Assembly: GCA_028534125.1 (NCBI GenBank)
Contig: CM052820.1
Span: 15,004,001 to 15,068,000 of the forward strand
Reading direction: 5' to 3'
Length of the DNA stretch: 64,000 nt
From: Lama glama
Taxonomy: Eukaryota
Positions 821 through 12,388 of this stretch are shown in pieces. Both the position numbers and the translations under genes were made by a program. Each line of letters opens with the position of its first letter. Position 1 is the first letter of the stretch. The notes beneath the pieces are model-generated. The model saw only the letters and a list, made by a program, of their open reading frames with translations. It was not told where the DNA came from and did not search any database.

Positions 821-918
821 CTGGGCACAAGCTTCAATGTGGTGCTGAATCATAGGGACCCCTGCCACAGGGAATAGGGGTTTGGGCACCTCAAAAGACA
901 AAGGCCTGAAGCGAGTCC
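821..918 (-). CDS. GMPPA: GMPPA second coding exon; gene continues beyond window start
   Basis: [33 protein letters not shown] (nucleotidyltransferase signature), 98 nt. Confidence 0.96.
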
Positions 919-1023
919 CTGGGAGAGGAGAGAGAAGCACATTTCAGCTTCCTGCCTCCCACTGCCCCCACCCTACCAACCACTATAGCCCAACCTCCTC
1001 CCCCCATTCTCCTGGCTCCTCAC

Positions 1024-1063
1024 CCTTTTGAGGGCCTCCAATCAGGATCACAGCTTTGAGCAT
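1024..1063 (-). CDS. GMPPA: GMPPA first coding exon (exon 1083-1024); mannose-1-phosphate guanylyltransferase regulatory subunit alpha
   Basis: ATG 1063: MLKAVILIGGPQK|G, donor gtgag. Confidence 0.96.
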
Positions 1064-2320: not shown

Positions 2321-2589
2321 AAGCCCCAGGAGAGGGTGGGGCTTAAAGTATACAAAAGAAGAGGAGTCAAAGGCTCTGCTATCCCGTTTGAGAAGTGAAG
2401 AAACTTCTGATCGTGAGAGAAATCCTATCTCAGATTTAACTATCTGTAAAATGAAGCATTGGATTAGGCATTCTCCAAACATTCTGACCCCAACAGTCTG
2501 TGACCTTGGCGTGTTGATCTGGAATAAGTGTGGGTGAGAGAGCATGGGGAAATGGCGTCTCAAAAGAATAGATGAGACGCGGAGTGCCA

Positions 2590-4690
2590 GAGAGAGCAGC
2601 TTTATTAAGCAAGATGAAGCAGGGTTGTCGGTCCCAACAACCCCAGAGCTTGAAGCCAGGGCGAAGTGTATGAGGGCCACTTTCTGGCCACATCCACGAG
2701 ACCGAAGCTCTGTTCCATGCTCAGGCTGTTCTCCACATACACTTCGTACTTGCCGCTGTCTTTGGTCGTGGCCCGGCGGCTGGTCAGCGTCGTGGTGGTG
2801 CTGCTGATTACCGAAGAAAACTCTAGCGGGGAAGAGGGGGATGGCAGGACCTCGAATCAGTTTACGCGCGACCTGGGCAGGAGTAATTAGCCAGCTCTGT
2901 TCTTCGCCTCCCATTTTCCCGCCCCCGTCCCACTCCTGCGTTTCTGGGCCCTGTGCCGCCCAAGCTCTGGCTCCAGGCGCTATCCTTGCAGCAGGTCCCC
3001 ACCCTCCCCTGGCGTCCTCCTCGATGTCTTCGCCGTCCTTGGTCCAGCCCACGTCCGGCGCAGGCTCGCCCAAGATCTCTGCAGTCAGCGTAACCGTGGT
3101 GACTTTGCATGCCTTTGTGTCATTCGGTCCCTTCTGAATCTTCGCCGGGACTAGAGGAATGGAAAGGGAATGCGACCCATTGAGGCACCTAGAGATAAGA
3201 TGAACAGGAGCATCACTCCCCGGCTAATAGCCGGCTCTAAATACAAAATGGATTTAGGCTGGCTGTGTGACGTTGGACAAGTCTTTAGCCTCTTTGGGGC
3301 TTCAGCTCCTCAACTGTCAAACAGGACTAATCCTGCCCCTCAAGTTGAATGGAGGAGCAAAAGAGATACTACAGGGTGAAAGCCCAAGAATATTCACACA
3401 TCTCGCGGTGATTTGGAAATCGCCCTGGGCAGGGAGCCAGAAGACTAAAACTCTAAACCTGGCTCTGCCTCTGACTCGCTGTGACCCTGGGGCCCTGGGG
3501 TCTAGTGACTGAAGCCCATAGCGGACTTCTTAACCTGGATGGAACAGGATCCTAGGGTAGGAAAGGGCCACGGGCGGCCTACGCTGCACCCTGGTCTGTG
3601 TCTCGAGCTGTGCTGGGTCTGGGCCACATCCGCGTCCGAACTGAGTGAGGCCCGACGGTAAACGCGGCTGGACCCGGCTAAGCGCCTGCTGGGTGGTGCT
3701 GTTCTGCGCGGTGGCACTGCACTCCGGGCGCGCGTACCTTCCACGAGGATGCGCGCCAAGTCGGAGCACTGGCCAAAGTGGTTGGTTACGTTAATGCTGT
3801 ACTGCCCCAGGTCTGCCAGCACGCCATCGCTCACCACCAGTGCGACTACGTTCGGGTCTCTGAAGACATAGCGATACTTGGGCCCGTCGCGCAGCTCCTT
3901 GCCATCCTTGCTCCAGTGGATGAACGGGTCCGGGAAAGCCGAAGCGGTAAGTCAGCTTGGCCGCGCTGCCCTCAATCAGCACCACATCCTTCAGCGGCTC
4001 CAGCAAACGCGGCGGCCTCTTCCCGCGCAGTGCCTTCCGGGACCTAGCCGGAGGCGGGTTCAGGGCCCAGAGCTCCCATGACTCAGTTCTGACCCCTCGC
4101 AGTTCTATACATCCATACATGGTCCCCTGCCGATCCCCTCGGCCACTAGACCTTTAAACATGGGGGAGGGGCAGCCACTCCTAAATTGTTACCCTGATAA
4201 AAGTATCTACTCTGTGGGCCACCCTTTCACACCTCAGTAATTGCTCTTTCCTAAGTCCAGTGACCCTAGCGGTACATGACACTATGCTCGGCCCTCCTCC
4301 ATCCCCTAAATGCAAGGATGAGCGTTCTGCAGCTCCAGTTCCCTTTCCCCGGAAGCGGGTTCTTCAGGCCTCCCCCTCACCTGTGGCCGCGGTAAGAGGC
4401 CTGATGCTAGTGGCCACGCTCTGGACCTGGGGGGTCGTTGATATCCACGGGACATCCCGGAGGCCGGGCTGCAGCCGCTGGTTTTTTGGCAGGAGCTGCT
4501 TTGGACATCTGGGGAGCAGAAAACAAAGAAGGGGGTCTAGGCTAACACAGGACTCTGACCTTCAGCCTTTTCCCTGCAGGTTCAGAACATCCCCTGAAAT
4601 GGGTGTGTCTAGACTCACCGTGAAGGGACTTGGGTCGACTAACTGGGTAGCAGGTGGCACGGAGCCCTTCCAGATGGCACAGCAGGATCA
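2590..4690 (-). pseudogene. SPEGNB: SPEGNB (SPEG neighbor; IQ plus 2 Ig) unitary pseudogene; exons about 4690-4619 (non-coding), 4508-4381, 4043-3738, 3150-3009, 2822-about 2590
   Basis: MSKAAPAKKP..., QASYRGHRSRK, KDVVLIEGSAAKLT, GEPAPDVGWTKDGEDIEED and DSGKYEVYVENSL are recognisable, but there are frameshifts, an in-frame TAG, a GG donor and a lost stop. Confidence 0.85.
2601..2606 (-). terminator. SPEGNB polyadenylation signal AATAAA
   Basis: About 80 nt downstream of the ancestral stop position (2685-2683). Confidence 0.65.
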
Positions 4691-4694
4691 TGGA

Positions 4695-4935
4695 CAGGTA
4701 TTTAGCTCCAGGCCCAGGTTTTATACATCACTCCCCTCCTTGCCTTGTTTGATGTGGTTGCCCCAAGCCCCTGGGGACCCCAGCCCCTGCCCCCAACCCA
4801 AGCAGTCTCTTTATTTAGACTGAGGATGCCTGAGATGCTGGCTCAGCCACTGAGGCAAATCCCAGGGTGGGGGTAATCCAAGAAGCTCTGGGGTGTACCA
4901 CGTGTCAGTGCCAGGACAGCTGGGCAGCTGAAAGT
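4695..4935 (-). promoter_or_regulatory. Muscle-type promoter of SPEGNB
   Basis: TATAAAA 4725-4719, MEF2-like CTAAATAAAG 4818-4809, CACGTG about 4899, two CAGCTG E-boxes at 4917-4931. Confidence 0.55.
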
Positions 4936-7797: not shown

Positions 7798-7990
7798 CTA
7801 GGGGTTGCCTGGGTAGGAGCGCAGCAGCACCTTGTGACGGGTGGCAGCCTCGGCCCGGCGGCGCCGCTGCTCGCCCAGGAACTCCTTGAGCCGGTTGGTG
7901 GTGAAGGTGAGCGTCTGGCGGCGCAGCTTCATCAGGTAGGCGTCCTGCAGCCACGGATGGGCCAGACAGTCCTGCAGGGAGGGCCGGCTC
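7798..7990 (-). CDS. SPEG: SPEG exon 41 coding part with stop
   Basis: [15 protein letters not shown]...RSYPGNP*, 193 nt. Confidence 0.96.
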
Positions 7991-12123: not shown

Positions 12124-12269
12124 CTAGGAGCAAAGGAGGAACAGGAGGGGCTGCTGAGTGAGGGAGAACACACGTCCTCCAGGCCCCCTTGGTTGCTACT
12201 TCCCACTGAACATCCCCGGGCCTTGGGGCCAAACTTGTCTACCCATCTCTCNNNNNNNNNNNNNNNNNN

Positions 12270-12388
12270 NNNNNNNNNNNNNNNNNNNNNNNNNNNNNNN
12301 NNNNNNNNNNNNNNNNNNNNNNNNNNNNNNNNNNNNNNNNNNNNNNNNNNNNNNNNNNNNNNNNNNNNNNNNNNNNNNNNNNNAAAGT
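12270..12388 (-). CDS. SPEG: SPEG exon 32 (only the first 5 nt visible; remainder in gap, end estimated)
   Basis: Pyrimidine tract, cag|ACTTT giving D-F in the correct phase, then N gap 12252-12383. Confidence 0.65.

Follow-up and report, generated by a model that had tools for sequence, protein, structure and literature searches.

The SPEGNB gene of the window (the whole stretch of 64,000 nucleotides that was analysed) is very probably a fixed, long-dead unitary pseudogene of camelids, lying at the orthologous locus. The gene is disabled by frameshifts in three of its exons, a premature stop, a dead splice donor and the loss of its stop codon. The comparison with Old World camels, on which the age of these events depends, was made with the protein models KAB1278437.1 (Camelus dromedarius) and EPY79428.1 (C. 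ferus), and thus rests on protein models, taken from two assemblies produced by different groups.

Location and orthology of the SPEGNB remnant

The minus strand of the window was read from 2400 to 4800 and the four candidate exons were translated in all frames. When the cat SPEGNB protein (XP_025768478.1) was compared with the window by tblastn, all four exons were matched, in order, at 4508–2686 on the minus strand between SPEG and GMPPA, with an identity of 72–90% per exon. A word search, for which a stop-free reference over the 3′ part of exon 2 served as query, matched entries named “SPEG neighbor protein” or “CAVP-target protein”, 231–240 aa long and ranging from fish to mammals. Intact SPEGNB is built of an IQ motif followed by two I-set Ig domains, and its nearest solved relatives are the Ig pairs of titin. 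In the window, I-set matches were obtained on the exon 2, exon 3 and exon 4 pieces, and the IQ region is recognisable in a shifted frame only.

SPEG, the SPEGNB remnant and GMPPA follow one another on the same minus strand throughout, with SPEG exons down to 7828, the remnants of SPEGNB at 4508–2686 and the ATG of GMPPA at 1063. The nearest coding parts of the two neighbours are:

7828–7989, minus strand: last matched coding stretch of SPEG, the upstream neighbour; 96% identical to whale SPEG, stop-free, intact
821–1063, minus strand: first two coding exons of GMPPA, the downstream neighbour; ATG at 1063–1061, end of exon 2 at 821 followed by a GT donor, intact

The SPEG exons are 92–100% identical to a whale SPEG fragment, and no stop or change of frame was seen inside them. 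Likewise, the first two coding exons of GMPPA have their ATG, their GT donors and an NTP_transferase match, so that an earlier note on this DNA, which had called the visible exons of both neighbours free of lesions, was right on this point. Such clean flanks place the SPEGNB remnant at the orthologous position and indicate a good local quality of the assembly. Read from the sequence, the remnant is the orthologous SPEGNB locus between SPEG and GMPPA.

Two further observations concern this neighbourhood. Seven runs of N, of 132–212 bases each, lie inside SPEG, one at 12252–12383 and six between 48469 and 55219. Moreover, an acceptor AG with its pyrimidine tract stands immediately 5′ of the SPEGNB ATG (4510–4506, minus strand), and in the entries of gray whale and hyena SPEG exons are fused to SPEGNB. 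This AG and these fusions may point to a non-coding exon further upstream, to transcripts that read through from SPEG, or else to mis-annotation.

Disabling lesions of the four exons

The exons, their lesions and the signals around them are as follows, in the order of transcription:

4381–4508, minus strand: SPEGNB coding exon 1, 128 nt; ATG at 4508–4506, acceptor AG at 4510–4509, donor GTGAGG from 4380
4429–4434, minus strand: C-run one base longer than expected, six in place of five (+1 insertion); apparently specific to the window lineage, both Camelus models shifting frame here relative to the window
4407–4409, minus strand: TAG at codon 34, counted in frame from the ATG; the Camelus models read TGG in the same register
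4401–4403, minus strand: 1-nt deletion, ATC-AG-GCC against an expected ATC CAG GCC; probably common to Camelus, to judge from the model frames
3738–4043, minus strand: SPEGNB exon 2, first I-set Ig domain; 306 nt against the 308 needed (1 + 102 codons + 1)
3947–3949, minus strand: Cys75 of the Ig domain replaced by Tyr (codon TAC), by tblastn comparison
3943, minus strand: codon of Ile77 cut to a single T (2-nt deletion), a frameshift within Ig domain 1
3009–3150, minus strand: SPEGNB exon 3, first half of the second I-set domain, by tblastn and translation
3007–3008, minus strand: GG at the donor position of intron 3; ancestral state probably GC, the Camelus models fitting GC or GA
3001–3002, minus strand: GT six bases past the dead donor, a frame-keeping candidate cryptic donor
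2823–3008, minus strand: SPEGNB intron 3, 186 nt long, without a stop and in frame; kept in both Camelus gene models
2686–2822, minus strand: coding part of SPEGNB exon 4, second half of the second I-set domain, by tblastn and translation
2809–2812, minus strand: GGTA where Camelus has one Gly codon (+1 insertion), specific to the window lineage
2683–2685, minus strand: AGA at the position of the stop codon, after VDVA; common to C. dromedarius, which has this Arg and this 26-codon extension too
2601–2607, minus strand: next stop, TAA at 2607–2605, overlapping an AATAAA at 2606–2601; 26 codons past the lost stop

In exon 1, the part enclosed between the C-run (4434–4429) and the deletion (4403–4401) is read in another frame and gives QVQSVATSI where QVQRAAIRI is normal; it is because of the extra C that the TAG at 4409–4407 comes in frame. 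The switch of frame in exon 2 falls between LTYR and SAFPDPF, and exon 4 begins as A GTT TTC TTC GGTA ATC. With the exons joined in order as they stand, the longest ORF that starts with an ATG has 48 codons.

Most of this damage had been pointed out in the earlier note, and its account holds up well. The TAG at codon 34 is there as it was described, both when the minus strand is read and by tblastn, and the two frameshifts of exon 1 are to be added to it. The shortfall of two nucleotides in the exon at 4043–3738, which had been placed near 3943, is borne out by a codon 77 that consists of a single T, and the loss of the Ig cysteine at 3949–3947 by a codon 75 that reads TAC. The extra base it reported at 2812–2809 is seen in the GGTA, and the stop after VDVA does read AGA. 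One statement has to be amended: the exon at 3150–3009 is followed by GG at 3008–3007, as the note had it, but that GG replaced a GT is probably wrong, the Arg found after R193 in other models making GC the likely ancestral state.

This last point deserves some explanation. Intron 3 is read through in Rhynchonycteris naso, in the black rhinoceros, in both camels and in three ORFs from run assemblies, and in all of them an Arg stands after Arg193. An Arg directly at this place requires the second base of the intron to be C or A, and the sequences compared make GC, not GT, the probable ancestral donor of intron 3. GG is an unusable donor for this intron.

It is worth mentioning that annotated models which retain intron 3 exist for the bat (RefSeq, 302 aa), the rhinoceros and the two camels. 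In the window, a stop-free frame of 364 codons (3223–2132, minus strand) opens in intron 2, crosses exon 3, intron 3 and, out of frame, exon 4, and extends into intergenic sequence on the GMPPA side. This frame is a chance opening in GC-rich DNA, which gene callers could take for a gene.

Comparison with Old World camels

Searched with the 364-codon frame, the dromedary entry KAB1278437.1, named “CAVP-target protein [Camelus dromedarius]”, showed 91% identity, intron 3 included, against 50–58% only for the read-through ORFs of other mammals in the same frame. Among named sequences, those of C. dromedarius and C. ferus come closest to the non-coding parts, and a camelid origin of the window is thereby supported at the sequence level. 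The second camel entry, EPY79428.1 of C. ferus, is a cluster mate of the first; it is a 649-aa chimera of the SPEGNB relic with GMPPA and carries the name of GMPPA. The earlier note had supposed that the gene was lost in a probably camelid lineage, and the 91% identity to Camelus through intron 3 agrees with this. The loss is nonetheless older than it implied, as it is common to the Old World camels.

The two entries correspond to 4455–821 of the window and are gene models threaded through a dead SPEGNB. Both start from an out-of-frame internal ATG (MSRGYQRPP) that runs into GPERGHWYQASYRGH, with QASYRGH, and both use a cryptic acceptor inside exon 2 (at the junction H/SKDGKEL), so that the 5′ part of this exon is skipped. 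That two independent pipelines avoided the same part suggests, without proving it, that the frameshift in exon 2 is common to Camelus. From the frames of the models, Camelus would have the normal five C in exon 1, yet the same 1-nt deletion of exon 1 as the window. The dromedary model has an Arg at the stop position and continues into the same extension as the window. In exon 4, VFFGISSTTTT is read in one frame in Camelus, from which it follows that the +1 insertion is absent there. Being models of a dead gene, KAB1278437.1 and EPY79428.1 are unsuitable as orthologues.

Replacements were compared over the 148 residues that are comparable between the window and Camelus:

Derived, shared by window and Camelus: 11 (R115S, E118V, P132H, S139L, D155N, N156D, G199S, I207S, G227S, A233G, R234L)
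Derived in both, but not to one and the same residue: 2
Derived in the window alone: 6
Derived in Camelus alone: 4

Reality and fixation of the lesions

The stretch from 2590 to 4508 (1,919 nt) was looked for in assembled contigs of sequencing runs. All of its sampled 31-mers (a share of 1.00) were present in runs of four studies that carry three organism labels, and the share was 0.98 under a fourth label and 0.93–0.97 under a fifth, these being contigs and not reads. Altogether, 14 runs, spread over 5 organism labels and at least 6 studies, lie at 0.93–1.00; the source animal may be among the ten samples that match best. JGI metagenome contigs were scanned twice with exact patterns for camelid host DNA, around the exon 2 deletion and around the lost stop, without a match, and no intact camelid SPEGNB is found among the named proteins in the matches listed.

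Could SPEGNB be intact after all, and its lesions be errors of assembly or base calling, such as the homopolymer indels of long reads? Two of the indels do lie in short homopolymers, namely the C-run at 4434–4429 and the AA at 2809–2808. Homopolymer errors, however, do not account for the 2-nt deletion, the TAG, the lost stop or the 31 odd residues, and the same 31-mers turn up under 5 organism labels in runs of at least 6 studies. In addition, two Camelus assemblies by different groups yield models that dodge the same damage, and SPEG and GMPPA are clean on the same stretch of assembly. We therefore consider sequencing or assembly error to be very improbable, in line with the earlier note, which had discounted base-calling error; the shares of 31-mers across several runs, the Camelus models, the clean neighbours and the lesions outside homopolymers all bear this out.

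A loss that is polymorphic, or recent in a single species, and not fixed in the lineage has a precedent in humans, where a SPEGNB frameshift allele segregates at 5.8% (PMC11576641). Against such a case speak the many independent lesions and the heavy load of substitutions in the window, the nearly identical sequence in runs under 5 organism labels, and the lesions and 11 derived residues held in common with two species of Camelus. We give hardly any credence to it, and a loss fixed in the lineage remains the preferred explanation.

In RNA-labelled runs, several of them named “reproductive system metagenome”, 7–31% of the sampled words of 2590–4508 were found, and some part of this stretch may be transcribed.

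Relaxed constraint on the remnant

As a reference, 40 intact orthologues of 238 aa were taken from primates, carnivores, bats, whales and afrotherians, human entries being excluded, and the window was compared with them piecewise. Of its 232 alignable residues, 31 are absent from all 40 intact orthologues, and 21 of these 31 fall at columns that are invariant in 40/40. An intact orthologue has, by comparison, few residues of its own: 0–4 in 39 of the 40, and 11 in the remaining one. Between window and dromedary, 12 of 150 exon codons differ, against 7 of 88 codons in non-coding sequence (intron 3 and the extension after the stop), which is 8% in both cases (Fisher p = 1). This equal divergence indicates that the exons have drifted like non-coding DNA since the split and leaves purifying selection unsupported. 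A relaxed constraint on the SPEGNB of the window is thus supported at the level of sequence. Disabling lesions, intact orthologues in related lineages and a divergence resembling that of neutral DNA, by which a unitary pseudogene is recognised, were all seen here.

One may still imagine a shortened or alternative SPEGNB product with some function, made from an upstream start, by way of the cryptic donor at 3002–3001, or of the type predicted in the Camelus models. An isoform with a start upstream of exon 2 is in fact annotated in the macaque, intron 3 is in frame and stop-free with a frame-keeping GT six nucleotides past the dead donor, and part of the stretch occurs in some RNA runs. Yet all of these routes meet either the 2-nt deletion in the first Ig domain or the +1 insertion in the second, the cysteine of the first Ig domain is gone, and no ORF from an ATG exceeds the 48 codons mentioned above. 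Exon and non-coding codons having diverged from Camelus alike, at 8% and 8%, there is no sign of purifying selection on any such product either. A functional product of this kind is very unlikely, and a long-dead gene accounts better for these data.

Age and order of the events

Lesions and 11 derived residues common to the window and Camelus imply that the gene died before the split between Old World and New World camelids, and that its decay went on afterwards. On the camelid stem, the gene would have lost one nucleotide in exon 1 as well as its stop codon, would probably have acquired the frameshift of exon 2, and would have seen about a dozen otherwise invariant residues replaced. After the split, the lineage of the window, which is probably that of the New World camelids, would have gained the extra C in exon 1 that brought the TAG in frame, a change of the intron 3 donor from GC to GG, the extra A in exon 4 and about six further replacements. 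With these changes, a protein of any length would be impossible. Transcripts with a premature stop upstream of exon junctions are subject to nonsense-mediated decay, and since the stop at codon 34 lies upstream of three exon junctions, a transcript starting from the normal ATG should meet this fate.

By a crude clock, the changes on the stem (about 12) are roughly twice as many as those at a tip (about 5–6), which suggests that constraint had ended tens of millions of years ago, well ahead of the split. A difference at 8% of codons would correspond roughly, over few sites, to 3–4% per base. Judged by published divergences, such a value would fit a comparison between Old World and New World camelids and not one between two species of Camelus.

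SPEGNB in other mammals and comparison with known cases

We know of no function of SPEGNB. The protein and the amphioxus target of calcium vector protein descend from one family, as the old name “CAVP-target protein” reflects. Intact SPEGNB of 236–238 aa is found in pig, whales, carnivores, bats, primates, afrotherians and marsupials, and the intact gene occurs in fish as well. SPEGNB is therefore intact in most mammals and not equally disrupted in them, the outcome that the earlier note had named as speaking against its reading.

Some models look eroded nonetheless. Those of the pecorans (muntjac, white-tailed deer, the fallow deer model labelled “LOW QUALITY”, sheep XP_027820656.2, goat and musk deer) contain 25–39 residues unseen in intact orthologues, and have truncated or frame-shifted ends. 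The pangolin SPEGNB of two species is labelled “LOW QUALITY PROTEIN”, with 42 unseen residues in the model of Manis javanica. Models of armadillo, porcupine, manatee and black rhinoceros are aberrant as well, the number of unseen residues across all eroded-looking models being 16–42. The gene is intact in pig and in whales, whose branches lie between camelids and ruminants or next to the latter, and this argues that the camelid and ruminant events were independent; in the same way, lesions and substitutions that differ from those of the window make the pecoran and pangolin erosions events of their own.

The lesions of the window are camelid-specific, and the loss of SPEGNB itself, as the eroded-looking sequences elsewhere suggest, would not be unique to camelids among mammals. 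The earlier note's description of a lineage-specific unitary pseudogene has to be qualified in this sense: a pseudogene with lesions particular to camelids stands, an event without parallel among mammals does not, in view of the pecoran and pangolin models and of the human allele. Perhaps SPEGNB was knocked out independently in camelids, pecoran ruminants and pangolins, and conceivably also in armadillo, porcupine, manatee and rhinoceros, a suggestion that we make tentatively and regard as somewhat doubtful. If this is true, such recurrent losses would form a natural knockout series, and a physiology shared by the animals concerned could hint at the function of the protein.

Among small muscle proteins SPEGNB is one of the best conserved, nearly invariant in sequences from fish to most mammals, and yet camelids have lacked it for tens of millions of years. 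Their loss implies that SPEGNB is dispensable in some settings and offers a comparative handle on its function. The papers found that mention SPEGNB deal neither with camelids nor with loss of the gene in non-human mammals. Expression of SPEGNB has been reported in pig longissimus (PMC10137702), and in humans it is very low and restricted to tongue and skeletal muscle (PMC9846087).

As a gene loss, camelid SPEGNB is fairly ordinary, and its standing as a well-supported lineage-specific unitary pseudogene is sound. With the intact genes of cat (XP_025768478.1) and blue whale (XP_036713035.1), the remnant in the window shares the place beside SPEG, the four coding exons and the splice phases; unlike it, these genes encode 231–240 aa, nearly invariant among mammals. 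The Camelus relics (KAB1278437.1 and EPY79428.1) resemble the window in the 1-nt deletion of exon 1, in the 11 derived residues and, in the dromedary, in the loss of the stop, but would lack the extra C of exon 1 and the extra A of exon 4 and may keep a GC donor. These relics are annotated as proteins, one of them chimeric with GMPPA, and we read them as annotation artefacts. The pecoran and pangolin models, which were judged from protein models only, differ from the window in having other lesions and other substitutions. Finally, human SPEGNB is a polymorphic pseudogene (rs11437065, p.Val64GlyfsTer26, an allele at 5.8%; PMC11576641). The human gene is likewise dispensable enough to bear a loss-of-function allele; there, however, a single lesion segregates at about 6% in an otherwise intact gene, whereas the SPEGNB of the window is broken many times over, in a state common to camelid genera.
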